Source: Ophelia neglecta
Lineage: Eukaryota
Length of the DNA: 64,000 nucleotides
Assembly: GCA_965285935.1 (NCBI GenBank)
Contig: OZ260664.1
Coordinates: 85,870,001 to 85,934,000 of the forward strand
Direction of reading: 5' to 3'
Below are positions 38,546 to 64,000 of this stretch, in pieces (positions within the stretch are counted from its first letter, which is position 1; the number at the start of each line of letters is the position of its first letter). The notes under the pieces are model-generated. The model did not search any database and was not told the DNA's origin. It saw only the letters and a program-made list of their open reading frames with translations. The position numbers and the translations under genes were made by a program.

Positions 38546-38630
<85 letters not shown>

Positions 38631-41600
38631 AATTGACACCGGCGAAGATGAAGATAAGTCAGGCAAAACGTTATAGTAGTAATGTTTTTGTAAGCGGTCG
38701 CCGCAAAATTGCGACTACTACGCGGTCACTCGGCCGCCAAACCGACACCCTAGTCTCGCCGTTTTACGCGTAACGCGATACAGGTCGCAATTTTGCGGCG
38801 ATCGCTGTCAAACTTTTGCGGCCCGTGTATGTCCCAGCTCTGACGAACCCTATTGTTTTTGGTGTGTGCAGCTACCGGAAGTCAGCTTTTAGGGCTGAAA
38901 AACGTCTTTTTCGGGAAAACGCTGCCGTATCGTAGCGGAAATTGCTATTGACTTCCGGTTAGCGTCAACATGTCCTCTTTTCCATTGCCGATCCCGCTGT
39001 TGCCGAGCGGCACACTCGCACCGCTGAAAATTTTGCGCTATGACGTCATGAAGTTACGTATTTTAGCCTGTTTTTTCAAACCGGAAGTAGAATTCTGAAA
39101 TTTTTCAGGCATGTTGCCCCGACCACTAGTAGTCCTTGTGCCAAGTTTCAGATTTTTTGGTTCACGGGCGCCGTCTACAGAGCGTCCCAAAAGCGTTGCC
39201 GCGCGTTCGACAGCGAAACTTCCGCTAGGCGCCAAATCGCGATGATGCGTCGCACATGAAATTTTCCAGCGGCAATCGATAGACATTCTCAAAGTAGGTG
39301 TCCGCTCTTGTGCCCGGAAAAATTTCGTCCGTTAAGCTCTCAGATGCATAGTTTTCGAGATAACCGCCAAATCTCGTTTCAAGTCTCGTCGGCCATATCT
39401 CCCTTACCCGGGCACTTAGAGACTTCAATTTTTTTTTAAACTGCTTCAAATTTTGCCAATTTTTTTTTTTTTTTTTTCATATAGCAACTTATCGCTGAAA
39501 GAAAAAAGTCCTTTTGAGATTGTAGCAAATGTGGATGCCAATAGTGCCTCTCTATGGGGAACGTGCCGTCAGAATTTCGATTTGGGCCTTAGTTTTTGGA
39601 GATATCGCCGAATCTCGCCGTAAGCCACGTTTTGCTCTTGCGGCGTGACTATATGTCGTAGCCAGACGAAACTAACACCAAACGAACCGCAATGTCGCCA
39701 GTGGCAACATATATTGGAACCAGGTCGCTGCGCATGCGCGATTTTCCAGGAAAAGTCAAAACGTGTTTTAAAATTTGCCTATTTTTGTAAAATCGGGAAC
39801 GGGTGTTTCCAGGAGATTTTCGGAGATTTCTTACTCACATCTTTATCTCTTTTTTTTTACCCCTTTTTCGTCTATAATCCTGCGCATGGGTGCTTACGCC
39901 GAAGTCTACGACTGCTTGTTCTATATGCTGTGTCTCCTACACGCTGGATCGGTCCAATACCGAGAAGAGAAGTGTATTGTTGTGATAAAGTCTGTAGTGC
40001 GTACATTACCTTGGTATCGGCACAATGCGTCAATCCCATATCAAGAAGAATAGTGTCTACCAATCTATCTTTAACCTCTTTTGATAAATCTGTTCCTAGT
40101 CTCAGATTAGCAGAAAATGCTATATTTTCCTTTACTGTCAGAGTGCCATACACTGCATCTTCCTGTTGGCGAGAAGCAGTATGTAACATGAATAAATTTA
40201 CTGGTTGCGATCAGATGATTTTATACTCAGAAGTGACTGCAAAGTCGTTTCGCACCTGAACAACATATCCGATGCTTCTCCGAAAATTTTCTGGACGGCT
40301 TTTTCCATTTACCAAAACGAGGCCTGCTTGTCCATTTGGGTCCTTTCTGCCGGCAATTATGTCCAGGAGTCTAGTCAATTAAAGACTCATCAGTGAAAAG
40401 TAGTACGATTTGAATTTATTCAAAATGTATAATGACTAACAAGTTTAGACCAGCGAAATATTAATATCACTTACGACGTCTTTCCACATCCGGTTGGTCC
40501 AAGAATCGCATTCAAACCACTGGGATACTTGCAGCTGTACACAATATTGAAAGAAAGTCATGTTAATGAATCACCGCAAGTAAATTAGTTTGTACTTGAT
40601 AATACCTGACAAAATATATGTGGGTGTGAGAGACTTGGACGAAACGTGGATGAGTTGTTTGTGTATTAGAATACAAATAATAATTTTGACAATGGACATA
40701 ATGGGTATGGGTAACCTGGTTTTGTAGTAAAGCATGCTTATGATTGACATAACTTGAATAATACTTCAATGTGGCAGACTTCGTACAAATGTAGGCGACT
40801 TGGTTACATCATAATAATAGCTACAGTGTATGATAATTGGCTTAAAACGGAGTGTGAGAAACGTGGTACTGGTATTCCTTTTACTTAAAATACTTGATAA
40901 TAGTTGTGACTAAATATGTGGCTGTGGTGGACTTGGATGTTGAAATGTGTGTGAATGGTTTTTGTACTTAAATACCTATGACAGTTAATATAAAAAATAT
41001 AATATCTAATAAGTCTATGTTCTTGAGTCAAAAGTTGTCATAAGTCATATAAAACTATACTTAGAAATTCTTCCAATTATCAGAAGCTTTTTTTGATATT
41101 AGCCAAACATGAGGCAACGACATAGCACACGGACCTGTTGTCAAAATGTGATATCTTTGGCTAGATTTAGTACAATACAAGACAAGACAATTCCGGCAAT
41201 ACAGGTAGACGGGTCCGATTAATGCACTATTTGTTAATTATATTGCTTTGCCTGCCGGGTATCCACCCCCTTTTTGTATGGACTGAAGAGCATACGCCAC
41301 TCCCTTCCGTTTAAATGTATGATCAACCTTTATAAGGGGAAAACATACCGTCGTTATAGGAGGAAAATTTATTTGAATGTTGAACATGCAATTTAAAGCA
41401 GCACTCTGACATTCACACCAATTACTCTTACTGATCATTGAGCCATTATCTGACTACTAACAATTGCTAATGTTGCAGGGTTCTTAACGGATTAACTGCA
41501 TGTAAATGAGCTTGGTAATGGGTAATGCATTGTTAAAAGTACAAGTAACAATTAATCCCTGAGATTTAAATCCATGCCATGAACTGCTTTTTTTAAGTTG

Positions 41601-42281
41601 GCGGATTCAAGGTAATTAGCGAGATAATCCTGATGTTATTCTATGTGCATTATATCCTCTGAACTCAGTTAGGTTTATATGATTCTTTGATGGAGTTTGT
41701 GGATCGAATAAACAACACATGATTTGTTTTCCTAACATTCGTAATATTTTTCTGGATAGACAGAGACAGGAGCTAAGTATTTGATTTATTGTTCTCATAT
41801 ATCTTCGAAATAGGAGAAAGTGAAATCATAACGTATGTTGGGTGGGAATCTGCTTAGTGTAGATGCAGTCTGGTAAAACTCAATGTTCTTTAACAATTTG
41901 CCATCACATCAAGCATTACAAGGTCAAGCTCGAAACATCCAACCTGTTAGTTCGGGACCTTTTACTGAGTATCTTTTATTTCATTTATGTAATAATTTGA
42001 ATGATAGGAAATTATCATTATCATAACAATTACTCCTTAGTTATACAGTTTAGGCAATATCCACGGTATAGTGTGAAGTGAAGACGAGTTCGTTCACCTC
42101 CCTTAATATTAAGCCTCTACTATGTAGTAATTCACATTATACTGAAAATGTATGATAAATGCTTGACAAACCTAATATTTGCCAGTATATCCTTCCGTGG
42201 GGTCTTTCCGACAATTGCATATGACACATTATGTAAAGTGACTTCAGCTCCGATCGTGTCCATGTCTTTTGGCCCTGACAT
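30115..42281 (-). CDS. ABCG2-like (White/BCRP family) ABC half transporter, copy B, apparently intact, about 645 aa
   Basis: Exons: 42281-42172 (MSGPKDMDTIGAEVTLHNVSY), 40534-40475 (GPTGCGKTS), 40370-40256, 40162-40010, 38459-38302 (VSGGERKR, FLDEPTTGLD), 37910-37759 (SIHQPRY), 36263-36183 (NPADFF), 34861-34684, 34577-34481, 34311-34246, 32754-32669, 32154-32065, 31952-31828, 31450-31296, 31153-31064, 30718-30654, 30271-30115. All introns are GT-AG, phases are consistent, and the total is 1938 nt. An acceptor just upstream of the ATG implies a further 5' exon. Confidence 0.93.
35495..35752. repeat. Two-copy tandem duplication of a ~130-bp unit in an ABCG-B intron
   Basis: TGCAATCTAT...CACACATATCCCT.CCATTTAACTAGAAAAAA...ATCAAA.GCAAT occurs twice in tandem. 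Confidence 0.8.
38549..38627. repeat. (GA)n microsatellite
   Basis: About 39 perfect GA units; this is the source of the SLSLSL run in the 38262-38666 ORF. Confidence 0.98.
38640..39800. mobile_element. CpG-rich interspersed element, probably a non-autonomous DNA transposon, in ABCG-B intron 4
   Basis: Abrupt GC/CpG-rich block in an AT-rich intron, with a 22-bp inverted repeat (38694-38715 and 38784-38805) and no credible ORF. Confidence 0.5.
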
Positions 42282-46689: not shown

Positions 46690-49600
46690 ATGGACTTGAA
46701 CCAGGCGGTGGCCATAGTTGGGGTCGCCTGCCGCTTTCCGGGAGGAGCTAACCTCGATGAATTCTGGAAAACGCTGGAGGAAGGGAAATGTCTTATGGAA
46801 GACATCCGGAAAGACAGATGGAGCATTGATGCTTTTTACGACCCAAACAAAGACGCCGCCGGCAAAACATACTCTAAACGGGCAGCTTTCATTGACAAGT
46901 AGGATTTTTATATTGTCGTACAGGGGCGAATACAGTTTTAAATAGTGACAAAATGCGTGCGATGCACCATTCCACAAAAGCTACAAAGTTTATTATCACA
47001 GCGACGTTGAGATTGTCTAAAATAATTGGTATATTGCGCGATATATATTCGATTACAGGGTAAATTTTTAACATTTGAAGGCAGTTATGAATAATATTTA
47101 AACAAGCATATCCGATAAAGGTGTGATTTAGTATGTTACATTGTAATTTAGATGGTAAATTATCAAACAAGTAATGTATTATTAAGTGTGTTCTTTAATG
47201 ATGCCTTTTACAAGTGGTCTGACTCTAGGAGCTTGCAAAACGAATTTTATTCAAACAGTATGAGCATTTATCACTATAGCCGGCTTATCTCGAGTACATG
47301 AGTCAGATCAAGGCACTTCTTGGCGGAGCCTCCCGCGGCGGCATTTGCAATAATTGAGCTTGTATTGCAAAACAACCGATTGGGATAATCGACTAGGTAT
47401 AAGTATAAGTCTGACGGGAATTGAAAATTGGCAATTTGCATTTACACCAACTAGTGAATAACAAATTACCACATGTACCTGGTTTCCTCTAGTATTATAA
47501 TAAAAGCAGGGTTTCTTATGCTGCTTTGATATTTTACACAAAGTGAGTGTCAAGCATAAGAGAAAATCTAGTTCCGCTTTGGCGAAATCAAACTGGCCTC
47601 CACTGATTTGTTATACTTAGTTCACTGAAATTTTTTCAATTTCAGACTCTCGACGAATATAGTTAACCTCATATAGCACAGAACTGAGGTGTTGTCTAAT
47701 TGAATTTTTTTTAAATATTCCAAATTTAGAGAATATAATATTACTTAATTTTTATCACACTACACATGTCTAGTTCACGGGGTCTCAGAATCTGATCCTC
47801 ACGAAGTTATTCAATTTCATTCGTCTCAGGAACGACAGAAGAAATCAAACAGATGCCAGATTTCAGCTGGTCAAATTTCACCCTCGTCAATTGCAACTAT
47901 CTTCAAAAATGGAGACTAGAAGAACCTGCTGTTGTAATGATTTTTTTCGTGGTTGTGCCTCGGTGTGCCCTGTTATATCAGAGTGTTTAATCCCACAATC
48001 TTCATTCCATTGTGCACATTTCATACAAGGATCTACAGAGGCTAGGCCGTTGACTAATTTATTACTTTTATGTACTCCCTCTCAATGTTACACACGATTA
48101 TTCTTATTATAGCCCAACGTCCGTATAACTGCTATAAATTCTAAGCCACTACTCTAGTCTATCACATTGTTATAGGATAATCGATTAATTCAATACCTAA
48201 TATGAGGTTGCAAACGTAGTGGGTAGGAGAATTCTAGACATGTACTGTTGCACCTAGGGCAGTAATCAACCAATATTTCATGATTTAGGCACAACAGTTT
48301 ATTCCAAGTTGGGTTTTTACAGGTAAACTGAATACACGGAGAGCTTTATTGGGAATATTTTATCAAAATGAGTCATTAAACCTTTAAGTACTTTTTTTAT
48401 AGAATCAAACGGGTGCAAAGATTCTAAAAGCAATTTATTACCTTTTTATATATAAAAAAACAGTATACGAGCAGAATTGTCCTTTGTTATATTCACAATG
48501 AAGCGGATAGTCCTCGCAGTCTAAAACACACGCTTCTATTGCAGCGGAAATGCCAGGTTTAGTGTTTGGCAGCATAAGCATAAATAAGTTAAAAACACGG
48601 CGAGGCAAGGCGCCGACGTGACGTGACTTGACTGGACACGTATATTGAAAACCTTAGTGTATATAACTGTAACGCGTCTATTCGAGACCTATAGCCTATA
48701 AGCTATAACCTATAACGCGTTTATTCCTGACCTATAGCCTATGGTACTATAACGCGTTTATTCCTGACCTATAGCCTACGGTACTAAATCGCGTCTATTC
48801 TAGACCTGACCTATAGCCTACGGTACTGTATCGCGTTTTTCTAGAACTATAGCCTTTGGTACTGTAAGGCGGTTATTCAAGACCTAGAGCTTATGCTACT
48901 GTAAGGCGTCTAATCGAGACTTATAGCCTATGGTAGTGTTAGAGGTCTTTGCGAGACATATAGCCTTTGGTAGTGTTAGATATCTATTCGAGACATAAAG
49001 CCTTTGGTACTGTAATGTGTCTATTTGAGACTCATAGCCAATGATATTGTAACGCGTCTATTCTGTAAATCTATTCGAGATCTATAGCCTTGTGTTACAT
49101 AACGCGTGTTTACGAGACCTATAGCCTATGCCACTATGAACCAAGTAACTTTTATGATACATGTATATTCATTTTCGGGATCTACGTGAAATTGATAAAT
49201 AGATATTCTTGCATGATCGTCTAAATCTTGATTTAAAACCCCACAAGAGTTTCAAACCATCGGATAGAAATATAAATTGCTTACTTTCTTTCAGCTGGGA
49301 CGAGTGGGACAATACCTTTTTTGAAGTCAGCGAGGCGGAGGCAGAACGAATGGATCCTCAACAAAAGATCGCGCTTGAATGCGTCTACAAAGCGATAGAG
49401 AACGCGGGCATCAGCATTGACGACCTCTGGGGCAGTAACACCAGTGTGTATATGGGTAAGTAGTATGGTAATCACCATCCTGATAAGCAAATACGATTTG
49501 CTGTTAGCAAGACGTGTACATTTTGCTGAATACATTTCATAGTAAGGATTTTTCAATTTTGTTGCGGGGGGGGGGGGGGAGAGATTATTGCATCCGAGTG

Positions 49601-52600
49601 ATTTCTTTACCAAATGGCTGTACATTCAGAATGCCTTGATTTCAGCCAATTTTTAAAGCAAATTCATTGACACGGTTTGCGATTGAGGCCTCCCAAAACG
49701 TTGGCCGAATTTTCAGCTTCATGGTCACAGCGATATCACCGAAATTGAAGGCCTTCACGGACAATATCTCGGCTGCCATTCTTAAAATCTGAACACTCGC
49801 ATCTCGACCGTTCCTTATGTAGCCCATTCATTTGTGTAGGTGTTGACACGTTTTTCATAACTTGCCATCGCCAACTTGGAGTAGTATTGCAGTATGGAAT
49901 TGTCTCCACACAGTGAGTTAATGTTACGTCATGACAAGTAGTGCAGGATCGGATCGTTTATACACCAGAATGCACTGGTTAACATTATTAAGAGCCATTG
50001 TCCGGCCACTTTTGAAGAAACCTGGTCTGGACAAAAACCTCTTGCAGAATTACAGACCTGTTTCAAATTTGCCCTTTGTGTCAAAAATTATTGAGAAGGC
50101 TGTTGCCGGGCAGATTGAGTCTCATTTGAATGTAAACAATCTCACCGACCCGCTTCAGTCTGCCTATCGTGTCGGTCACTCGACTGAAACAGCTCTGCTG
50201 AAGGTTCATTCAGATATTGCTGAAGCCCTGGACAGGGGTAACAATTATGTTGGATCTCCCCGCAGCCTTCGACACTCTTGACCATGGCATAGTGTTGAAG
50301 CGACTCGACCATATGTATCGCATTCGAGGCAACGCCCTAGAATGGGTAAGATCTTATTTAGAGGGACGGAGGCAGGTTGTGGCCGTCGGTGGCAAGTAGT
50401 CATGCGAGAAAACTTTGTGTTTTGCAGTGCCACAAGGCTCAGTATTAGGCCCGAAGATCTATTGCCTTTATTCCAAGCCGGTAGCAGCAATTATTTCTTG
50501 CCATGGCTTCCTTTATCATATCTATGCTGACGATTCTCAGCTTTACATAATTTTAAAACCTAATCAGGATTTGACATGTGTTGTTAGACAGGTAGAGAAT
50601 TGTGTAGCTGACATCCATGCCTGGATGAACAACAATTTGCTCAAGCTAAATGGCAGTAAGACTGAAGTAATATTTTTCAGTCCCAAATCTCGACCTTTAT
50701 CAACCATTGATGTTTTATTTAAATTTGAATCTACAAATATTCAGCCAGTGGCAGAGGTCAGAAATCTGGGTGTATTTTTTGATTCCCATCTTAGTATGGG
50801 TGCCCAGGTGCGTGCCATAGAAAGGTCCACCAATTTTCAGTTGCGGAATCTCCAGAGGCTTCGGAGATACATGTCTGCTGACACTAGTAAGACCCTTTTC
50901 CAGGCGACAGTTATCTCTCGCCTGGATTACGGCAATGCTCTGCTGATGGGTTTACCTAAAAGTAGTCTTGTCAGACTACAGAAGATACAGAATAGGGCCG
51001 CTAGGCTGATTTCTCTTATACCCATGCAGCAACATATTACTCCGGTGCTTAAGGAGCATCACTGGCTCCCGGTGGAGCAGCGAATTAAGTATAAGTTGTT
51101 GCTCTTGAATCATAAGTCAGTTCATGGCCGGGCCCCGCCATATTTGTCTGGCCTGGTGAGTCATCATACGCAAAACCGCACTCTAAGGTCTTCGTCCATG
51201 GCACTTTTATCTATCCCTCGTGCCACCACAAAAACATATGGAGATCGTTGTTTTAAACTGGTGGCACCAAGCCTCTGGAACCAGCTTCCTGGCCCCCTGA
51301 GACACATTGAGTCAGAATATGTTTTTAAAAAGGATCTAAAGACATTCTTGTTCAGACAGGCCTACAACTAGTCAATCTAGCTCTATAAATTAAATTCTGT
51401 ACAATTATTGTTTTTAACTGGTGGGGAATCTGTTCTTTTAGATAGAAATTTTAGTACTTCCCGCATGGCCTGGTATCATGAATCTGGTCACAGGCCTATA
51501 TCTAGTCGATGGTTAATTTTTAGACTGTAGTATTTGTATTATATTTCCAGTAATTTAAACTGTATATACTTTGATGTAAAGCGCTTAGAGCTTATAGGAT
51601 AAGCGCTATATAAATTTAATAAACATAATCATAAACATAACCATACCTCGGGAAACCCCTTTATAATGTTATGTATCATATCAATTGAACATACATAATA
51701 AACACATTCTTAAGGCAGTATTTCTTCGTTATATTAGTACGCATTAGAACTTGTCTTGGTAATTAAATAATATAGGTTTTAGATTTTGCCTTGTAAAAAA
51801 CACTTTCTCTTCGATTTTAATTATTTACAAGTGCTTTTTAAATTAAATTAGTTTTTGCTTTTGAAGGCTGATGACCGTGGCCAATTTCACTTGGACTCAA
51901 TTTTCCTGCTCAAGTTCTAAGACAATATATCATGTTTGTTGTTTCTTTTGTGGTGTGCTAATTTCTGGTATTTTATTACTTTTCACCTGGGCCTCTTGAG
52001 TGATGTATTTGGTCCTGTGGTTGGTATCTCCCGATGCTGTCAGAACTGTTAGATGGGCGGTGCTTCATTTATGATTTTGCGTTGTCAGCCGGCTATCCAC
52101 TCAGGTCTTTTTTCATCCTGATAATACTTAGCTACTTTGGATTTCATCAAAATAGCATGCATGAAAGATTAAGAATACCATATCACATAACAGATGGGAG
52201 CTGAGTGTTTGTGTGTTTATGTGTGTTGAAGCGAGGGGTGTCTTGTAAAAAGCCTGTTTGTTATCTTTCCTTTTCTTCGCAAAAGTATGTATGAATTGTT
52301 TATTTTCTAATTGGGACCATTCTATTCTTCCAAAATCGCCTATGTGTTCTTGTATTATTTGGAGAAAGAGAACACGGTTTGTGAGAAGGTGCTAATTCTG
52401 CCGAAAGGTGTTCATTTTAATTGAATATAGCCACCTTCAAGACAATGCTAATTTAAAACCACAGAATACATATTTGACATTAATATTTAAAACACTAAAT
52501 GTCTACATAAAACCGGATTCGGAGTTGTTTTTCTTTATTGAACCATATAAAAAGTAGAATGTTTATATTTCAGGACAAATGAATAATGATAAGGCGGGGC

Positions 52601-55600
52601 TGTCCGAGAGAGATTTGTCAGAGGTGTCCAGTTATACCAGTACCGGAATCGCTCGAAGTATGCTGTCCAACCGAGTGTCTTACACCTACAATCTCCAAGG
52701 CCCTTCTATGACCCTGGACACGGCCTGCTCGGCGGGACTCGTGGCGGTCCATCAGGGCATCCGCTCTATCTTGTCGGGTAAGATACATTTTGCGTGTTAG
52801 GGTATGCACTAACATCGATGTATTCAATAACAAAACGCACTTTTAAAAAAGAAACTAAAATCTGACCTACGTGCTAACCAGCTGGTATGTGTATATATTT
52901 GTAATGATTTTACCACGCCGGAAATATATCTTAATTGCTTAAGAGTTGATAAATTTACACTAATGCAACCTGCATCTCGATTTGGCACGGATAGCTCCTT
53001 GGTAAATAGTTATATAGGCGTTTTCTACAAGAAAAATTCCGACCATGAAATAGAACCAAATAAAATACAATATTGATACGGCTGCTTTCTGCCAAATAGC
53101 GCCATGTTACGTTGAATTTTTTTTTCCAATTATATGAAGGTTACGTAACAACTCCATGGTGGACACTGGACCATGTACACTTAAATAATCGAGTTTTTAG
53201 AAATCCAAAATATCGAGTTATTAGTTCGCAATGATGTGCTTATATAGATATCGTAATTTCGAGTGAAAAATGTCCCTTGATAACCTATTAGGTTTGCGTG
53301 TACTCTCGCACAAGAAATTACCTTTTAATCCAACGCGACCAAGTGGCTACCCTACGGCTGTCTGAATCAAACTATACTAAAAATGTATTTCAATAAAAAT
53401 ACATGCCGCCATACATTTGTTCGGAAATTATAACCATTTTTAATCAACCAGGTTCGTATTATGTATAAAGTGGTAATGTCCAAGTAAGATAGCAAAACGT
53501 AATGCAATGACATATATGAAGTATAAAATGAGTTCTTTAAGCGCCCTATGCAATATCTACCAGCCAGATAATTAGGGTATGCTATCGCTGTTATCGCTGA
53601 GAGGAGTCAGAGTTAGTGTTGGATACCGCATTATAATAGTTGTACTAAACTTGCCAACAAAATTTTCTTATTTGATTTAATCATTTCCAGGCGAATGCTG
53701 TGTATCAATATGTGGAGGTATTAGTCTCATACTCTCCCCATCACCATTTGTAGGCCTAAGTAAGGCCCGCATGTCTTCAGAGACCGGAACATGTCACGCC
53801 TTTTCTGACAAGGCCGATGGCTACGCCAGAGGTGAAGGGTGCGGTGTTCTCGTCCTCAAATCAGTCAAACAGGTGGATTATTTACTGTGATACTTAGAGA
53901 TATACAAAGTCCCAACGTATTAAAATGAGAACTTTTTTCCATTTATTCTAACTAAAGATACATTTGAAGTCGTTCTGACTATTTTAAGGCCAAAGAAGAC
54001 GGTGATTACATATGGGGTTTCATTGCATCAGCGGTCAACCAGGACGGCCACACTGTCACACCGATCACTGCACCAAGTGTTACCATGCAGGAGAAATTAC
54101 TAAGAGAGCTGTATGGAAAAATACAACTCGAACCTCAGGTGGTTCAATATGTGGAAGCACACGGTAGGCTACATCACGCGAGGGGCACTATGGTGGTCTG
54201 TAGAGAAAGAAAAAGGTTGCTAAAGTTGTCGTAAAAATGTGTCATATTATCACATTCTGGCGGGGCACATACGCCGATAGTTGTCCAGCTCCTTTTACCA
54301 TTGTATACTTCTTGTTTGGTTTATTACTATGATGTGTTATGTGAATTGTCACCATTATTTCCACAATGATGAAAGTGTACTTCAAGTGCCATTTTATAAC
54401 AAATATCCATCAACTATAGAATTGAGATATAAAGATAAAATAGCATCGGCAGCAGAAGTCAGAAATCAATTAATGGGTCCGTCACGCAAGCTTATTGTTT
54501 AAACAAACTCCAATAAGAGCCACAATAAATTAATGCACAGCACCATTCCAGCTCTTTTGATTAGCATGTGGCCAATTACATTTTATCACTATTTGTACTT
54601 AGTGTTTTCGTTGCCGGACCTTTCGACCTATATCAAAGCACAGCTATACAATTATCGTTTTGGTGTGTCTGTGAAAGTAAAAAAATATATAAATTGATCC
54701 TCAGAAATCTCGGGGAAGATGGCCCGTGCACGGTAGGTTTAGTCACTCCTATTTTCAAGGAAATTTGGTCTTAACATTGATTTTAGTTTACTTGTTTTCT
54801 ATAATTAACGGATTTCTGCTGTACACTATAGAACCTATATTCAAATGCGTGACCAAAAAAGCACTACTTTCATAGGTAAAACCAGGACCCATGGAAAGTA
54901 CGTCCTATTGTTCGACACGTGACCCATGTTTCCGTGAATCTACATTAAATGTAGTATCCTATCGATTGAAAGTGTTCAGATACTTGTTCTTTAAATGACA
55001 TTTGTTTTATTTTTCAGGGACTGGAACACGCGCAGGCGACCCGGTAGAAGTCGGTAGTCTGGGCCGTGTTATCGGCGCCGCCCACGACAAGAAAGATCCC
55101 TGTTGGATAGGTTCTGTGAAAACCAATATCGGTCATACAGAATCAGCGGCCGGTATTGCTGGAACAATCAAAGTTTTGCTGATGATGAGGCATGGTAAGA
55201 TCGTTCCGTCTTTACATTTTGATGTGCCCAACCCGAACATTGACTGGAATTCGTCAAACCTTGCGGTACCTACGTCGGTGATGCCTTGGCAAGTTAACCC
55301 GCAGGGATTACGCATCGCTGGCATAAATTCTTTTGGTTTCGGTGGAACAAATGCGCATGCTATTCTTGTGCAAGAAGAACATTTTCCAAAAACCAGCGGT
55401 CTGGGCGATAAAGGTAATCATGACCTGAACATAGTTACAATTTCGGGAAAGTGTCAAAATGCTTTAACACAATCTATGGCTGACCTTCTCGCTGCCATCA
55501 AATCAGGGCAAATTCAAAAGAATGTTCTTTCTCTGAGCTACACTTCAACTGCTCGTCGACGCCATTTCCGCTTTAGAAGAGCATTTACTGTTCACGACAC

Positions 55601-58600
55601 TTTAGAACTTGCAGCGCAGTTAGAAAAGAGGGCAGAAATGCCGACCCATACTTCTTTTAGCAAAGATAAATCCATTGTTTTTGTTTTCGGTGGCATGGGC
55701 ACTCACTGGTCTGGGATGGGAATGCAACTCATTCAATGTGAGAGGGTTTTCCGTGAGAAAATGGAAGAGATTGATTCCATTATACAGCAGTGCGAAGGTT
55801 GGGGGCTCCTTAGTGCAATACAGACTGGTAGCGATCTGTCTGACCCAACCGTAGGTCAGCCAGCTATCTTCGCTATTCAGGTTTCTTTGGCCACTCTTTG
55901 GAGGTCTTGGGGCGTCCTTCCCCGTGCTGTGATTGGCCTCTCCGTTGGAGAAATTGCCGCAGCTCACATTGCGGGTAAACTTAACCTCTCCGATGCAGTC
56001 AAGGTGATCTGTACTAGAGGCAAGCTCCTCAGCCAAGTAACTGGTGGAGCCATGCTTGTCATCGGGAACATGGACGTTTCCGCTGTCAAATTGTACATTA
56101 GTCAGTTTGGTGGCACGGTTGAAATAGGTGCACAAAATAGTCCAATAACCTGCACCATATCTGGCGATGAAAAACAAATTGATGCAATCCACAACGAGCT
56201 GAATTCTTTGAAAGCGACAGAAAACCCTCGCTTGTTTCTCAGAAAACTTCCGGTCAATATCGCCTTCCATAGCCATTTTATTGATTCGATTGTACAGCCT
56301 TTAGGAGAACAACTCGCACAGCTATCCGAAGCACATCTTGAGAATTCCACCGACATCATCTCATCAGTCTCTGGTAAAAAGGCAAGTACTGGGGATTTCA
56401 CTACAGCACACTACTGGCAAAAGAATGCTCGACAAGGGGCGGTGTTCTCTCAAGGTTTACAAACACTTACAAAAATGGTTAAGAATCCTATTTTCATCGA
56501 GATTAGCCCTAAACCTGCTTTAGGACGCAACATCACTGAAACTCTTAACGGTCAGCCGCCTTTAATAGTCCCATCGATGAAAGAGAATGAAGAATCAAGA
56601 ACGATTATAAAATCGCTGGCCGCGATTTATGCAAGTGGGGTTAACATTGCATGGAAGTCATTTTGGGGTAATGTCAAAGCGGAAATATCAACTTTCCCTC
56701 GATATCAATACCAGAGAAAGAGACTGTATAACGAAACTAAATCCGTTACAAAATGGCGATTGGGACAAAATGGAACAGATTGTCACAGTACACGTGAACA
56801 TGACACTGGCTTTCTTGTGCCAGAGGGGGAGGGTTGGCTCTGTCTGATTAACAAAGAAACAACGCCTTTTGTTTACGACCATCGACGCACCGGGAAGCCA
56901 TTAGTTCCCGCTGCAATGTATGCCGAGATCGGTTTGTCAGCATGTATTGCTACTTTGCAAAACAAGACCCATTTGAAAAACAGCACCACAAATGTTTCAC
57001 TAGTTAACGCACTTCACATAAATCAGGAAGATGCAGAATCCAAAATCCATGTTTTAGCTGACCAACAACCTGAGATGCCATGCAATTACTTGCGGTTCTT
57101 TATTAAAGGAGGCTCAATGCTGCTGGCAGAAGGTGATGTTCAGTTTCTCCAAGAAGAAGATACTGGTGATATATTTGACATTGAAGCCATCAAAGTAAGA
57201 TGTGCTGAGTACTTTGAAGCTGAACACTTATATGACCTACTGGAAACGCACAAATACACATATGGTAAACGTATGCGAGCTGTGGAAGAAGGTGTCAAAA
57301 ACAAGACTGAGTGCTTGACAAAAATTGTCCTCCCTAAGGACGTCCATCATGAGAGGAGGGGTGTTATCATTCATCCAGCCATTTTGGACTCCTGCTTTCA
57401 ACTGGTCGCCTTGCTGATTTCCCAGGACGCTCGGAAATCCCTGGCTGTTCCAGTCGCGCTCCATGGACTGAAAATACTAGGTGACCCTATGAATGCAAAA
57501 TGGATTTACATGAAGGTTATTTTTAAAACTAAATCCCAGTCAGAGTTTTCTGCGCATATCCTAGATATCAATGGCCATGAGCTTGCAAAAGCTAGTCGCA
57601 TTATCATTAAATCTATCGATGAGGTTTTGCTGCAGAATCCGTCTGAACTGCGTTACATGCAAGGTTGGATACTAACGAAACGTGACGCAAAAAAGGACCA
57701 GACTAATGATTATATAGATGAATCAGCCAAGAACACTAACATATGCCATATCTATGCCAACAGTGAGTTGAACCGAGATGTGACCACATCGTTAACAGGG
57801 CAAGGGGCTTGCGTAACGCCGATTGCGTGTCGTAATATCACAAGTGACATTGAGAAATGCTTCATAGAAGTTAGTCCAAAGGCCATTTTGTTTTCCATGG
57901 CTATACGCCCACAAGCTGCCACTCAGTTCACTGAACCTGACCTGGCAGTGTCCGAGGAATGTTGCTGGTGTCTCATGAACATTTTAAAGTATTGTTTGAA
58001 ACGCAAATACATCCTACCAGTATTTGTACTGACCAAGCACGTTTATTTGCGACAAGACCAGGCACCTTGGGCTCAGCTGCATGATTTACCACAACTGAAT
58101 GCCAACTCGAGTCTGATAGGCTCCGCACTGTGGGGTTTGGCCAGAACCGCTGTTCGTGAGGGTCTCCGAGTCATCTGTATTGACATGATTCGCTGTAACC
58201 TAGAAGAAATCAACAAAGTTTCTTCTCTGGTAATGAGCGACACAATGCCTTACCCTGAGTGGGTTCTCGCTGATTATTATTCATACAGAAATGAGTTTCT
58301 ACCCTACATGGGACCACCCGCTCACAACCATAGAGTCATACCCATGCGACATGACGATGTTGTACGGATTGTGTCTAAAACTAGTCATGGAAGTATAACA
58401 GTTCAACAAGATGTTGTGGAACTAAAGCAGGAAGACACACATGGACATGTTAAAGTAGTTAGTGCCAGACTCCATGATAACAGCTGGTTTCCTTCTTACT
58501 GGAATGACAATCCTCATGACGCGTGCACCATTAATGACGAGGCTCAGACAATATTGGCTTTGGATTACACGGCAAAGATGTTGAATCCTGATAGGCAAGG

Positions 58601-61600
58601 CGAATTTTTCGGCTGTCAGCCCATACCACTCGTGGAAGTAGCTCATGTAGATAGCAGAACGCTAGTTCCTGTATCGTTGCTCCCCAGCGACCAGCCAATG
58701 CTTTCCCTCTGGCTTGTTTCTTGGGATGTTTTACACAAACACGCCGCCGGAATTAATCACATTCGGGTTCACAACCTGGCTAACTGGCATATTCTGGAAT
58801 ACTGCATTAAGTCTGTTGCACAAGCTCTGACCTTTAGCGTTGAAGAAGACACGTCTGTTATTGTACCATTAGCAATAGTCTTCGCATGTAAGAACATGGC
58901 GCCCAAAGCGTTACATTCCATATTGCAAACCTCGGAAAAGGCAATAGTTATAACATCAGATGCCAATTTGAGAGTTGTCTGTGGATCATTAATGGACGAA
59001 GGGCATTTTAGAAATGTAACTTTCTACAACCATGTAGATTTATTTGTGCCCCATCAATTGGTTGAGCTGGTCCCAAATTTCAAAGCGTGGCTGCTAAAAT
59101 GCCCCCTTCCCAAAATTCCACTGCAATGCAAAGTCATTAAGCCAAAGCCAAACGAACTGCGAGAAGGCTTTGTTATTAATGGAATAAAAAACCAAGGGAA
59201 CAACATTGTTATGGAATTACCACAGAGAGACATTAGTACAATTCCAAGAATTACTTACCAAACACAAACTCTGTTCAGATCAAACGGTTGTTACATTTTG
59301 GTGGGTGCCAACAAAGGGCAGGGGTTAGCATTTCTAAAGCAAATGGCCGCACTTGGCGCTGGTGTTCTGATTGCTTTGTCACGAACTCCACCTACGAAGG
59401 CAGTATTTGAAGAATATGAGCTCATGTCAAAAGAAAACAATGTTCAAATTCATTGGGTTCAAACCGACGCTACAGACAAGAACAGTCTCATTGAGGCATT
59501 CCTCACCATTGACAGGCTGCGCGGAAAATGCCCTATAAGAGGGATATTCCAAGGAGCTGTAGTTCTCGCTGATGCGTTGGTGCAGAACTTAACATACGAA
59601 CAATTTGTCTATGCTTACAGGGTTAAAGTGCATGGCACATTTTACCTCCACTCTCTTACACAAGATATGGAATTGGATTACTTCGTGTTGCATTCATCCA
59701 TCACTGCTATATTAGGGAACATAGGACAGACAGCGTATGGGGCTGCAAATGAATTTATGAATTGTTTTGCTAGTTACCGGCGGTCTATTGGTCTCCCTGG
59801 CCAAAGCATCAATTGGTCGCCTCTTAAGTATGGGGTTATTCAGTGGAATACAGCTGCAAAGCGTCATTTAATGTCTGTTGGCATTGTTCCTTTAGAGAAT
59901 GATGAAGTGTGGTATTGCATGAAACATGCCTTGCTAGGCGATCTTACATACGTGACCTATGGCAAATTTGACCTGGAAAAATTGATAACTAAGGGTCACC
60001 AGGAAGCCTTTGGTATTTCAAGTAGACTGATATTTCTTGCCACAACTGCCTCTCTAAAAAGGAACGATCCCATAGACTCGCAAGTTATGTCTATCAATCT
60101 GTCCAAAATGGCTTCTGAAGCACAAGCGTCCAAATCAAAATCACAGTGTTATATTGAAGACATTATATCTGAACAGTTGTCAATCAGTTCACAAGAACTT
60201 GCTGGTAGCCACGCATTACCATTGGCCGATTTGGGATTCAATTCAATGGATGCGGTATATGTTGCTAGTAAAATTCAGCAAGATTTCAACATCCACATTG
60301 ACACCGATGGAAACTCTAGTATCGATAGTATGACAACTGATTTGTGGTCTAAGTTTGAAGGTTTGCAGACAGAGTCAACTGATGCTAAACCGTTTGGGCC
60401 ATTTGAACAGCGAATATTGCAACTTGTTCAGAACTCGGCCATGTATCGCCGTCACATGTCAAGCTTCTTGACGTTAGAGATTACAAACTGTTTTTTGAGC
60501 CCAGACTCCTTGGTAGATATGATGAAGGGCATCATTGAAAAGCTACCACATTTGAGGACTTCCACCAGAATTAACCATGAAGGCCGAGTTACCTTGATCA
60601 GGAGAAGTGTAGACAGTATTAACGTTCAAGCTGCGAGCGTAACAACTATATCCCTGGCTAAGATGCGAAACCATCTTATTTTTCTTGCAAACGATCTCAA
60701 TGTCTCGACGGAAACACCTTTTAAAGTCCAGGTTCATAACAGTTACGACAATCACCAGAGTATGTTCCTGGGAATGGTGTTTCACCGGGTTGTGGATGAT
60801 TGCCACACAATTCACCAGATCTTGAGTTTACTGATCAACGCCATGCAGCGCAAACCCCAACCTCTACCATTATACATGGTCAAGGATGATGCATATCGAA
60901 TTCAGGAAATAGTTGCTGAAAGATATTCAGAATACTTTTGGCGCCACGTCCTTCCAGATATGTATGAGATAGTTAAAATGCCGCAATGCTTTTTCCATTC
61001 ATCAGATAATAGTGAGAAATTTGACGGTAGCATGTTCAAAGTGCTGCTTGATGGTCGCAGCTATGAAAGCGCGTTAGATGCCTCAATGACTGCAGAAGTC
61101 AGCTTGAATCAGTATGTGTTGGCTTTGTTCCAGCTGTACATTCATTTCTGTTCTGACGCAAAAGTTGTTATAGTTGAAATGACTATTGATATGCGTGAAA
61201 TTTTACCTAAGGATTTCCGCGATTACTCCGGAAACTTGGACAACGAACTGCTTGTTGTTTCAACAATTGATCCCTCTATTAATTGTCAAACAAGACTATT
61301 GCAGGCACAGGTATTTGAACAGTGCAAACATATTCAAAAATGTGTCCAACATGGACTTTTCCCAAACCAATCAATGCTTGATATGATCCAATTTCCAGGC
61401 AGTAATTCAGGTAAATCGGTCCAATTCGCCTTTGAGTATCGCCAAGGCCACGAAACATGCGATGCAACTGAACTAATGGACATGGATGTGAGAGTGGTGG
61501 AAATTATACCTTCCTCTGTTGGAAAACAAACTCTGAAGTTGTATGTTGTTGAGAACAAGTCAGCTAAACAGCTTGAGCTTTATCTATTATCTGGCCCAGG

Positions 61601-61757
61601 CTATTTTTCAGAGTATGGTGTCAAAGCCTTTGCCACAGGTTTCCAGGCATTTTTAAATAACTGCTCGCTAAGTATGCAGCGTCCACTCAAAGAATTCAGT
61701 GTAGCTGTGGAGAAAGAACATGGAGGTGTTTTGACAGTGACAACTGACACCATTTAA
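46690..61757 (+). CDS. Type I iterative polyketide synthase, copy B, apparently intact, about 2556 aa (KS-AT-DH-psiER-KR-ACP-C-like)
   Basis: Exons 46690-46898, 49295-49455 (DPQQK), 52574-52777 (DTACSAG), 53691-53872 (DGYARGEG), 53989-54163 (EAH/G), 55018-61757. All introns are GT-AG and the total of 7671 nt is in frame. KS Cys-His-His present; AT GLSVG and IAFHS; [12 protein letters not shown] and HPAILD; KR VLAD and YGAAN; ACP GFNSM; terminal domain FHRVVDD. Confidence 0.95.
48668..49138. repeat. ~37-bp minisatellite, about 12-13 diverged units, in PKS-B intron 1
   Basis: Approximate consensus TGTAACGCGTCTATTCGAGACCTATAGCCTATGGTAC, repeated head-to-tail without spacers. Confidence 0.9.
49990..51640 (+). 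mobile_element. 5'-truncated, frameshifted L2-like LINE in PKS-B intron 2
   Basis: RT motifs split over three frames ([37 protein letters not shown]; stop at 51371). The 3' end has a GTAAAGCGC...GCGCTATATAA stem-like motif followed by CATAA(A/T) repeats. Confidence 0.9.
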
Positions 61758-64000
61758 TTTACTACACGATGGCAATAAAGCCTAAGAAAAAGTTTAGTTT
61801 GAGTAATACATTATATTCCATTAAAGGAACTTTGTTTGGTATATGTTTATTTAAGCAAAGCAATTATGATAGATACATTAGGCATTGAATACAGTTCAAG
61901 GCAAACGTGCTTGTGTTCCAACACGACTTGTGTTTAACAGTTTAAATTATAATCTAGAGAACTTAAAATAAAGTTTTTACGGGTCAACCCATGACACACA
62001 TCGGAGCATGATACTGTGGTGCTAAGATCCTGCATTTCAATGCCCAGCATATTTGTATGGATAGAATAACTGACCAAGGACGCTAAAAATGGCTGGATGT
62101 GTTCTGCGCGCCGCCCTCGCATTTACTTATATAAACCTATAATAATATAATTGATTATCGTGTTTGCTAATATGAGAGTTTGCGCGTGGGAATAACAATC
62201 ACTTTTATTTACTTTATTTAGAGTCTTTTTTACACTATTTATTCCTTTCTTTTGACTCCTTTATATATTTTGCAATCTAATACTATAGAATAAATAGAAA
62301 AAGTCAACCTATTGTAACAATGGAAAATGGCATTAAAGTCAAGAGTGTTGACTTTTTGGTGTTTCTGTTTTTTGATGAAGTGTATGGCTTTAACATCATT
62401 ACCTCATACACTTTAACAGTTTGTATCGGGAATAATTTTCTCCCTTCAGCACAATTTTTCCAGTAAACATTATAATTGTATCATTTATTTTGTATATTAT
62501 TCTTGATAAATATTACAAAAAATCTTGTTAAACCAAATATGTCACATTTTTGTTCCTTATCTCGATGTTGTATTCGTGTATAATGGTATTAGCCTCAACA
62601 TAGCAGCAAAACGTTCATAAACCATTTTGCATTTTTTCTGCACATCATGTCTTATTATATTATACCTATCAACATTAAAGTAGAGCTATTTTGCTAATTT
62701 GAATAGCATGTTATGGAAAAAGAAAGCCGAATAAATGTCGATATTTGTATAACCACAGAAGTGGTGCATTTATATCTGAATATTAGTTAATTAGTCTTAC
62801 AAGGCATGCTCTCGACGAAACAAATGAACCATAAGCTCATACAGCGCCATCTATGTTATGCTCTATCAATGTTAAATCGACAATATTGTATATTGTTGTC
62901 TTATTGATCAATAAAATGATATTTAACCCTTATTTTGTCTTTTCCTAATCTTATGATGACTAAAATCGCCATTATATTACTAGGTTGAATAAAACGCATA
63001 TTTTGAAAGGTGTTTTCTGAAATATATCTGAGAACATAAAGCCAGAATTATGGATTTTCACATTTGATATCGAAAGTGTAACCTAGAGTAATTCATGGCT
63101 CCATGAATTTCATAGGTTGCGAAACTATTTTTCGGTCGCTGCCAAAGTATAAGTTGTAAACGGTATAGACTTATGAGAGGTTCCAAATGAAAATGCCCGT
63201 GAATTAAAGTCATAATTGGAACCTTAACGAATGTTTTCCTCTGTGATGCTGATATTTTTATAGTTTGTAAAATGGGGATGAAATACCGCCAGACACTCAA
63301 AATTCAGTTATCCAAACTTGTTTTTTAAAATTGGTCAAAAGTTAGGGAAACCGTCACCTGCAGACCAACAAGTTTTCTGTGGTTCATAATTGATTCCCAG
63401 ATTTGTGATATTCAATACGATTGTGACGATAAGATTAAATAAAAGTAAAGAAACATAAAACTGTTCCCATGAAGTTTCCCATGAATATACATGTAGTTTA
63501 TTTACCAATGGGTGAGCACCTCGTACAGAGCTGCATTTAAACACTACTTAAACCCTTTCGATTAAAGGTGTATAATGTTTTAATGTTTTGGTAACTTTCG
63601 GCTCTTGCTTCACCTTATCCGTAATTCCGGAATTAATTTTTAAAAAGTACCTGAATAGTACACTGGGTCAGTAATATATCTATGTTAAGGAGCGGGAAGG
63701 TAATCAATGGCGTCACAATGCTATATGACATCAGTGGTATTTTTGAACTCTGTAAGCTGGAATAGATATTTAATAATAATCCTATATCAATAAACCGCTT
63801 CAATAAAACGTTCAATAAGTAAAATTTTCCTTTTTAAATGACCACTGAAACTTTTATTTCACAAATTCACAATGCACATGACCGTACCGAATTCCCATCG
63901 CCGAATCCACCCTTCCTTTCTATGTATAAAATCTACCACCTTCGAATGAAATAATTCAATCTTTGCATAAATATGTTCAATTAAAAGCATTCTTACAGAA

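Follow-up and report, generated by a model that had tools for sequence, protein, structure and literature searches.

PKSs encoded by animals are a young field, and most of them have neither an assigned product nor an assigned release mechanism. C domains are on record in mollusc PKSs, whose introns are confined to the N-terminus (Lin et al. 2024, PMC10764717), in a study that does not appear to discuss the state of the catalytic motif. In the fungal PKS LovB, the CON domain has an HRxxxD motif, and its authors tie the mutated motif to an inability to form amide bonds. Acceptor entry to LovB CON is blocked, yet the domain is needed for the correct product (PMC6260248). The same His-to-Arg replacement is found in the glycopeptide X-domain, which recruits oxygenases instead of condensing (PMC6260248; PMC11546977). 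Fungal CT domains carry SHxxxD, in which the second His is kept and the first is lost, and they need no downstream acceptor (PMC6260248). Mutation of the second His leaves some C domains active, and activity has also been reported for one with HQxxxDM (PMC11546977).

Here we examine the terminal domain of two PKS genes, PKS-A and PKS-B, in a 64,000-nucleotide stretch of Ophelia neglecta DNA (the window, to which all coordinates refer; Table 1). The large 3' open frame of PKS-B spans 55002–61757, with a splice acceptor CAG ending at 55017, and Pfam assigns to it the C-terminal part of KS, AT, DH, KR and PP-binding (residues 1717–1768). Neither an ER nor an MT domain was found in the PKS by Pfam. 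For the exon model of PKS-B, exons were inspected one at a time, placing the upstream KS exons at about 46690–46899, 49281–49460, 52579–52790 (with DTACSAG) and 54085–54170 (ending in EAH-G). An RT fragment lies inside a PKS-B intron at 50415–51371. For PKS-A, the first exon is at 18066, and the stretch matched to Pfam spans 21552–28349. The predicted phosphopantetheine Ser of the ACP is invariant in 11 paralogs.

Table 1. Features of the PKS-A and PKS-B loci, with positions numbered from the first letter of the window.
Feature	Position	Strand	Basis
ABCG-A exons, head-to-head with PKS-A (first exon 18066)	6211..8824	-	tblastn
C-like terminal domain, PKS-A, 443 aa + stop	27018..28349	+	Pfam, paralog comparison
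HSVVDD motif, PKS-A	27411..27428	+	translation
ABCG-B, visible nucleotide-binding-domain exons, head-to-head with PKS-B, 5' ends about 4.4 kb apart	37721..42281	-	ORF translations
PKS-B upstream KS exons	46690..54231	+	exons read singly
PKS-B last exon: KS C-terminal part, AT, DH, non-catalytic middle region, KR, ACP, C-like	55018..61757	+	ORF, Pfam
PKS-B ACP; GFNSMD at 60234-60251; predicted phosphopantetheine Ser codon 60243-60245	60126..60371	+	PF00550, 23 bits
C-like (CON-like) terminal domain, PKS-B, 455 aa + stop	60390..61757	+	PF00668, AF2, Foldseek, VIA
LPHLRTS = core motif C2 (xxLRT); R56 conserved in at least 90% of sequences	60543..60563	+	alignment
H132-R133-V-V-D136-D137 motif = H-H-x-x-x-D of HHxxxDG; C138 at Gly position	60783..60800	+	MAFFT, hhalign, phmmer, model
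FWR = core motif C4; W184 invariant in all aligned animal and bacterial C domains	60936..60944	+	alignment
GNLDNELL = core motif C5 (GxFVNxL)	61230..61253	+	alignment
QHGLFP = core motif C6 (HQxxPF)	61347..61364	+	alignment
AATAAA polyadenylation signal, 17 nt past PKS-B stop	61774..61779	+	

The original prediction described about 450 residues after the ACP in both copies, ending without an adenylation, TE or reductase domain, and both statements hold. The tail comprises 455 residues in PKS-B (60390–61754, forward strand), closed by a TAA stop at 61755–61757, and 443 residues in PKS-A (27018–28346, forward strand), again followed by a stop. No A, TE or R domain lies 3' of the C-like domain in either copy, and a search downstream of PKS-B for forward-strand ORFs of at least 60 residues found none. 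The stop falls 443–477 residues after the start of the C-like domain in all 11 genomic paralogs. Translation of both copies also recovered the motif strings at the positions given for them: 60777–60806 of PKS-B reads [10 protein letters not shown], 27405–27434 of PKS-A reads MFHSVVDDCY, and [18 protein letters not shown] and QHGL are present in both.

The assignment of this tail to the condensation family, proposed from motifs, was confirmed by profile and by structure. PF00668 (Condensation) matches the PKS-B tail with an E-value of 1.2e-9 and 37.9 bits over profile positions 39–451 of 456, against a gathering cut-off of 30.6 bits, and matches PKS-A (21552–28349) with an E-value of 4.3e-9. 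Each of the 11 genomic paralogs independently exceeds the gathering score, with a best E-value of 1.8e-11. Comparison with canonical C domains by hhalign gave 94.5% probability and an E-value of 8e-8 over 391 columns, and in a joint alignment, the core motifs C2, C4, C5 and C6 fall column by column on those of canonical and animal C domains. A first AlphaFold run, in which the alignment contained only the 11 paralogs, was unusable (pLDDT 45.6). Once ten PKS-terminal domains from animals, three proteins with canonical C domains and three full-length animal PKSs had joined the alignment, the run yielded an AF2 model with a pLDDT of 83 and a pTM of 0.86. With this model, Foldseek returned solved C domains at E-values down to 1e-24 and TM-scores of 0.65–0.75. 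VIA superimposed it on CDA-C1 (Z 31, rmsd 3.0 Å, 400 residues), MokA CON (6ad3; Z 29.7, rmsd 3.2 Å, 405 residues) and SgcC5 (Z 28.5), and every match in the ESM Atlas was a C-domain cluster, with TM-scores up to 0.81. These structure searches do not tell CON and X domains from active C domains, as their Z scores spread over only about 2 units.

In sequence searches, the PDB gave one weak match, 8xjz, with an E-value of 0.8 for the single domain and 0.011 for the family profile, and an NCBIfam scan of the domain gave none. A word-index protein search with the C-like region inside the full-length protein produced 2563 candidates, none at an E-value of 0.001 or below, which reflects the huge database and the divergence of the domain and not an absence of relatives. 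The corresponding profile word search with alignment A3 gave only 3 matches. The PKS tail is a true condensation-superfamily domain, V-shaped with two CAT-like lobes, that occupies the usual place of a thioesterase, and its PF00668, hhalign and Foldseek results lie far outside what chance would give.

The active-site motif had been read as FH(S/R)VVDD paired with HHxxxDG, that is, as an HxxxDD variant in which the catalytic His is kept. This pairing proved to be one residue out of register. In the MAFFT alignment, the canonical HHxxxDG proteins (P0121–P0123) place their first His at H132, their second at R133 and their Asp at D137, and the animal domains that bear HH (P0029, P0049 and L031) show the identical register. 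hhalign against canonical C domains and phmmer against 8xjz agree, and in the AF2 model a strand (124–132) ends at H132 and a helix (138–153) starts at 138. H132 is therefore the first His of HHxxxDG, R133 takes the place of the second and catalytic one, and the motif Asp is D137. MAFFT, hhalign, phmmer and the strand and helix boundaries of the model all speak against the original register, in which H132 would be the catalytic His and D136 the motif Asp, and we reject it. H132, D136 and D137 are invariant across the 11 paralogs; an extra Asp precedes the motif Asp, and Cys, Arg or Ser fills the Gly position. Position 133 is Arg in 8 paralogs and Ser in 3, with Ser in the A copies. B-type copies thus read HRxxxD and A-type copies HSxxxD; the second His, the mark of a canonical amide- or ester-forming C domain, is absent from 11 of 11 paralogs, and the catalytic His is lost.

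With Arg or Ser at the catalytic position, the proposed off-loading of the polyketide to a free acceptor, with an amide or ester formed, is left without its chief support in the sequence. Replacement of the catalytic His, together with the precedent of LovB CON and the X-domain, weakens the case for release by canonical condensation. The domain might still actively transfer the ACP-bound polyketide to a free amine or alcohol at a non-canonical site, for example through positioning alone or with a conserved His, such as H132, acting as base, and we consider this possible but doubtful. Its location favours such a role, as it is terminal, follows the ACP directly and has no TE or R domain beside it, and so do the full C fold with its four core motifs, the purifying selection described below and the presence of the free-standing ester- and amide-forming SgcC5 and CmnI among the structural matches. 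The identity of the catalytic residue, however, varies even within the family. To our knowledge, the terminal or free-standing releasing C-type enzymes (fungal CT, VibH, PapA5 and SgcC5) all keep the second His, which also counts against active release. Published C domains that work without this residue (PMC11546977) speak for it, but the His-to-Arg change is a mark of LovB CON, whose authors report that it makes no amide bonds, and of the oxygenase-recruiting X-domain (PMC6260248; PMC11546977). The C-like domain moreover evolves with an omega three times that of KR.

Release could also proceed without an external acceptor, by hydrolysis or by intramolecular cyclization to a lactone or pyrone, as CT does for macrocycles. 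A terminal domain in a PKS that lacks a TE would suit this role, and CT-type terminal C domains provide the example; yet CT loses the first His and keeps the second (PMC6260248), the opposite of the pattern seen here, and we judge acceptor-free release improbable.

The wider family shows that the domain is maintained. At least 11 PKS paralogs lie on one chromosome, and their C-like domains are 41–98% identical to that of PKS-B, with the oldest copies at 41–43%. Omega is 0.30 for the C-like domain, 0.10 for KR, 0.15 for DH, 0.17 for KS and 0.31 for the non-catalytic middle region. These values show that the C-like domain is conserved under purifying selection in the 11 paralogs. A search of sequencing-run records returned three runs from one sample, their type unrecorded and none on record as RNA. 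The family data bear on whether the domain could be a functionless relic of an NRPS module that travels with the PKS. The missing catalytic His would fit a relic, as would the low Pfam score (38 bits, compared with 74–126 in other animal PKS-C domains) and an omega that is the highest among the named domains. On the other hand, an omega of about 0.3 is not 1, the reading frame is open in 11 of 11 copies even though dS exceeds 1 between older copies (synonymous divergence at or near saturation), 77 columns are invariant across a family spanning 41–98% identity and the AF2 model is confident. A functionless relic is accordingly very unlikely.

The adjacent ABCG gene noted in the original prediction is a regular companion of these PKSs. 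A divergently transcribed ABCG paralog lies 16–31 kb from the PKS in 10 of 11 cases, the oldest included, according to the paralog map, in the head-to-head orientation seen in the window. The translations of ABCG-B contain Walker B, the ABC signature and ABCG-type motifs. The PKS–ABCG pairing is conserved across paralogs, which amounts to conserved biosynthetic gene clustering, rare in an animal genome, and offers a compact two-gene unit for heterologous expression.

Given these results, the reading that we favor, though it falls just short of an even call, is a CON-like role in which the domain holds or shapes the chain or docks a partner enzyme and does not perform base-catalyzed amide or ester release. 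By analogy with LovB and MokA CON, it would take the ACP-tethered polyketide into its donor-side channel and either serve as a chamber that holds or shapes the chain or offer a surface on which a trans-acting enzyme docks. Product release would then need some other activity, and the divergently transcribed ABCG would presumably export the product. The missing catalytic His shifts the search from an amine or alcohol acceptor to such a role and a separate release activity. As counterpoints to a CON-like role, loss of the second His is not proof of inactivity (PMC11546977), the invariant H132, D136, H252 and H321 could form a different catalytic site, and the LovB analogy may be convergent. A broader proposal, which we put forward with considerable doubt, is an animal lineage that keeps up an expanded family of two-gene cassettes, 11 or more in number, in which a reducing PKS stands head-to-head with its own ABCG exporter and the LovB-like CON (HRxxxD) of the PKS serves non-condensing catalysis, as a pericyclase or cyclase chamber, or recruits a trans-acting tailoring or release enzyme. 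If true, the logic of fungal CON and bacterial X-domains would here have its first counterpart in an animal.

Several animal PKSs share this architecture. The Ophelia neglecta genes share with the clade of Lin et al. 2024 (PMC10764717) the KS-AT-DH-KR-ACP-C order, the clustering of their few introns in the N-terminal KS and a single, very large exon at the 3' end. With BLASTP, proteins of Saccoglossus, Ruditapes, Gigantopelta and Liolophura align from KS into the C domain. Domain order, introns in the 5' KS part and whole-length homology thus all place the family among animal PKSs with a terminal C domain. To call the architecture unusual for an intron-containing animal gene was an overstatement, as the molluscs precede it (Lin et al. 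2024, PMC10764717). Animal PKS-C architecture is already known from molluscs, and the Ophelia neglecta family is a new, divergent member. It differs from the Lin et al. 2024 clade (PMC10764717) in number, with at least 11 paralogs sharing one chromosome and an ABCG partner for 10 of these, and from other animal PKS-C proteins by its far more divergent C domain, which shows 10–15% identity to theirs and scores 38 bits versus 74–126. In a C-domain tree of animal and three bacterial sequences only, the PKS-B/A family sits alone on a long branch; support is weak (0.65), which makes any sister group tentative, and long-branch attraction towards the bacterial outgroup may have affected its place.

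Loss of the second His extends beyond this family, as it is absent from 9 of 13 other animal PKS-terminal C domains sampled, and among tandem Liolophura paralogs one has HH and the other HP. If a CON-like role is correct, this recurrent loss would point to the general function of such domains in animals. Saccoglossus P0029 reads KS-AT-DH-KR-ACP-C(HH) followed by an A-domain fragment. This layout is in line with our view that the C-like domain is probably what remains of an NRPS module in an ancestral PKS–NRPS hybrid.

Among characterized domains outside animals, the C-terminus of mycobacterial PpsE, PapA5, fungal CT, SgcC5 and VibH are likewise C-superfamily members that end an assembly line or acylate free nucleophiles; these keep the second His, whereas the domain described here lacks it. 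The X-domain (4tx2/4tx3) has the same C fold and Arg for the second His, with a Foldseek E-value of 4e-20, and is a recruitment platform for which bond formation is not reported. It differs in reading HRxxxDD, with Asp at the Gly position where the Ophelia neglecta copies have Cys, Arg or Ser, and in residing in the final NRPS module, where it recruits P450 oxygenases, rather than in a PKS. These two differences, at the Gly position and in the PKS context, led us to reject identity with the glycopeptide X-domain. The comparison with LovB-type enzymes in the original prediction is apt for a terminal C-like domain with HRxxxD. As with the CON domain of the fungal highly reducing PKSs LovB and MokA (6ad3; PMC6260248), the ACP of an iterative reducing type I PKS leads straight into the domain, which forms the C-terminus with no A, T or R domain behind it, and B-type copies carry HRxxxD in register. 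In contrast to LovB/MokA CON, it is animal and not fungal, sequence identity is only 11–13% and A-type copies have Ser instead of Arg; LovB, in addition, has the MT domain that Pfam does not find here.

The window carries two tandem animal type I PKS paralogs, PKS-A and PKS-B, whose giant last exons share 63% identity. In both copies, Pfam places the C-terminal part of the KS, then AT, DH, KR, and PP-binding domains, and finally a Condensation (PF00668) match in the last ~450 aa. Against a Pfam cut-off of 30.6 bits, the C-like domain of PKS-B scores 37.9 bits (E 1.2e-9; profile positions 39-451 of 456); that of PKS-A gives E 4.3e-9. An AATAAA lies 17 nt past the PKS-B stop codon, and no plus-strand ORF of at least 60 aa was found 3' of that stop in the window, so nothing A-, TE-, or R-like stands beyond the C-like domain. 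The terminal position of this domain is confirmed. PKS-B is a true intron-containing gene. A CAG acceptor ending at 55017 precedes its last exon and, with the exons read singly, the penultimate exon end (EAH-G) and last exon start ((G)TGT) together yield the KS His motif.

Features of the PKS-ABCG region and related loci (window coordinates unless a contig or locus is named; G000:C7 is the contig carrying the PKS paralogs)
Feature	Position	Strand	Basis or motif
PKS-A last exon (frame)	21552-28349	+	ORF
PKS-B last exon (frame)	55002-61757	+	ORF
PKS-B stop codon TAA	61755-61757	+	sequence
PKS-B KS exons	starts ~46690, 49281, 52579, 54085	+	exon-by-exon reading
AT active site, PKS-B	about 55940-55960; residues 311-318 of exon frame		GLSVGE
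ACP attachment motif	60234-60251 (PKS-B); 26865-26882 (PKS-A)		GF(N/T)SMD
ABCG-B, ABCG-type nucleotide-binding exons	37721-42281	-	
Cassette A	ABCG-A 6211-8824 / PKS-A 18066	- / +	
Cassette B	ABCG-B 37721-42281 / PKS-B 46690	- / +	
LINE ORF2	12833-16180	+	
Reverse-transcriptase fragment	50415-51371	+	
ABCG-PKS pairs	G000:C7 at 16.85-17.48 Mb, 85.75-86.05 Mb, 93.91-93.94 Mb		
Triplicated A+B cassettes, window inside	G000:C7:85772662-86049125		
C-like domain fragment (L012, L013)	G000:C7:95878185-95878924	-	
Stand-alone acyltransferase ORFs L027-L029	G000:C2:87174530-87276996; ORF L027:1378-2856		
P0094 double C-like domains	L020:14283-17975		

The usual AT nucleophile motif in type I PKS/FAS enzymes is GHSxGE; both copies have GLSVGE, in which Leu replaces the His beside the active Ser. 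The ACP Ser is kept in all 11 paralogs of the genome within GF(N/T)SMD, preceded throughout by N or T rather than the Asp of the usual G-x-D-S motif; N also occurs here in both Liolophura paralogs. An intact LINE ORF2 (1115 aa; endonuclease and reverse transcriptase) occupies part of the interval separating ABCG-A from PKS-A, and a reverse-transcriptase fragment lies inside a PKS-B intron.

The original prediction that the tail is a condensation-like domain was borne out. Each of the 11 paralogs matches PF00668 independently. An AlphaFold model built from these alone reached a pLDDT of 45.6. The alignment was enlarged with ten animal PKS-terminal domains (Gigantopelta, Ruditapes, Liolophura, Patella, and three further assemblies), three canonical C-domain proteins, and three full-length animal PKS proteins; every one of the ten domains matches PF00668, with scores of 74-97 bits for nine of them and 51.5 bits for the tenth. 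The resulting model (pLDDT 83.1, pTM 0.86) matched only NRPS C-type domains in a Foldseek search of the PDB (E 9e-24 to ~1e-20, TM-score 0.65-0.75) and superposed by VIA-align on CDA-C1 (Z 31.0, rmsd 3.0 Å over 400 residues), the MokA CON domain 6ad3 (Z 29.7), and SgcC5 (Z 28.5). ESM Atlas comparisons by features and shapes all led to Condensation clusters (cosine score 0.99, TM-score ≤0.81). A CAT-like/condensation fold was thereby found, and its assignment is secure.

The motif strings reported earlier sit at their claimed coordinates; the pairing of FH(S/R)VVDD with HHxxxDG, which made H132 the catalytic second His and D136 the motif Asp (PKS-B domain numbering), proved one residue out of register on four lines of evidence. 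In a joint alignment, the first His of the canonical proteins P0121-P0123 (HHxxxDG or HHxxxDE) falls on H132, the second on R133, and the Asp on D137. The HH-bearing animal terminal domains (Saccoglossus P0029, P0049, Liolophura P0105) pair identically, and D137 and W184 are the sole invariant columns among all 25 aligned sequences. Profile-profile alignment of the paralog family with canonical C domains gave the same pairing (94.5% probability, E 8e-8, 391 columns), as did phmmer, in a weak alignment with the experimental NRPS structure 8xjz. In the model, a β-strand ends at H132 and a long helix starts at 138, in agreement with the published location of HHxxxDG in the loop joining the central strand to the long helix (PMC11546977). 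In canonical register, the motif therefore reads H-R-V-V-D-D-C, i.e., HRxxxD, and HSxxxD in the three A-type copies. With Arg in eight paralogs and Ser in three, the catalytic-His position is unconserved even inside the family.

Searching the genome (762 Mb, 223 contigs) returned 11 full-length C-like domains, all on the window's own chromosome-scale contig and 41-98% identical to the PKS-B copy. All 11 reading frames are open and end 443-477 aa past the ACP linker; their alignment holds 77 invariant columns, including F131, H132, V134, D136, and D137. Between PKS-A and PKS-B, dN/dS is 0.30 for the C-like domain, 0.31 for the non-catalytic middle region, 0.17 for KS, 0.15 for both DH and ACP, and 0.10 for KR. 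In other paralog comparisons, the C-like domain has values of 0.26-0.5, except for 0.84 in one nearly identical pair. These values indicate purifying selection on the C-like domain, with constraint below that of the catalytic domains; that it is a functionless relic seems very improbable.

The A+B double cassette occurs as three tandem copies spaced ~120 kb apart. Among these, B copies are 93-98% identical to one another, and nonsynonymous divergence between A copies is ~1%. An upstream lesion is possible in the third A copy (C7:86016974), since its open frame spans just 1655 aa versus 2252 and 2282 aa for its two counterparts. A further fragment of the C-like domain (residues ~4-249, 52% identity) lies ~40 kb from the complete copy at 95.92 Mb; its two pieces are offset by a frame shift, and it is probably part of a pseudogene.

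The second His has been lost in other animals too. Among 13 other PKS-terminal C domains sampled (including loci L014-L020, L030, and L031 and proteins P0029, P0049, and P0075), it is absent in nine (K, S, A, or P) and kept in four. The tandem Liolophura paralogs share 49% identity in the C domain but differ at this position, with HH in one and HP in its partner. Domains with HH are dispersed over the C-domain tree, suggesting repeated loss. Three Gigantopelta copies lack the first His too (N-S). The Patella caerulea gene model P0094 has two consecutive C-like domains (~25% mutual identity), the second with QHxxxD, in which only the first His is lost; the pair may be a genuine tandem or come from gene-model fusion. 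In Saccoglossus P0029, KS-AT-DH-KR-ACP-C(HH) is followed by an A domain fragment, a layout that fits terminal domains left over from PKS-NRPS hybrids, an origin for which LovB would be a parallel case.

The predicted ABCG adjacency also held. The 5' end of ABCG-B, a transporter gene, faces the first PKS-B exon ~4.4 kb away, and the two genes of cassette A also stand head-to-head. Across the genome, 10 of the 11 PKS paralogs have an ABCG paralog in divergent orientation at a distance of 16-31 kb. The oldest PKS copies, whose synonymous sites are saturated, are among them, so the pairing is old and conserved; only the paralog at 95.92 Mb has no ABCG match nearby. Just three ABCG matches occur elsewhere in the genome. 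This pairing supports, but does not prove, a functional link, for example through export or common regulation, and has the appearance of an ancient, conserved animal biosynthetic cassette made up of two genes. Separately, three clustered single-exon ORFs (~492-494 aa) encode stand-alone C-superfamily acyltransferases; one, L027, matches AATase (E 3.6e-13), the N-terminal half of Condensation (7e-8), and PapA_C (9e-4), and has a canonical RHEIIDG (HxxxDG). Their sequences make them candidate enzymes for acyl transfer in trans.

The architecture was thought unusual for an intron-containing animal gene. Lin et al. 2024 (PMC10764717) already describe mollusc PKSs with or without C domains, their few introns being N-terminal; PKS-C architecture itself is thus known, and the PKS here is a new, very divergent member. 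Relative to that work, the HRxxxD/HSxxxD state of the motif here, the recurrent second-His loss in animal terminal C domains, and the conserved PKS-ABCG cassette appear to be new.

Of the proposal that a terminal condensation domain off-loads the polyketide as an amide or ester, the first part stands: a condensation-superfamily domain is present with no TE after it. The catalytic His is missing, however, which removes the chief argument for off-loading by condensation chemistry. Release onto a free acceptor through a non-canonical catalytic arrangement is a less likely reading. What the second His contributes is a matter of debate, and some C domains are active despite its mutation, one with HQxxxDM (PMC11546977); against this, the position here is Arg or Ser and varies within the family. 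Self-release through cyclization or hydrolysis appears improbable. We tentatively prefer, at close to an even chance, a non-condensing domain akin to LovB CON, which would hold or shape the chain in a chamber or serve as a docking platform; release would then come from a separate activity.

The crystal structure of the LovB CON domain shows Arg in place of the second His, giving HRxxxD, and a blocked acceptor entry to the channel; its inability to form amide bonds was tied to the mutated motif (PMC6260248). CON is nonetheless required for the correct product, as LovB without it yields truncated pyrones and CON in trans rescues (PMC6260248). LovB CON thus shares HRxxxD with the B-type copies, whereas the A-type copies have HSxxxD. 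The glycopeptide X-domain bears the identical His replacement (PMC6260248), within HRxxxDD (PMC11546977), and the same Arg occupies this position in 8 of the 11 paralogs.
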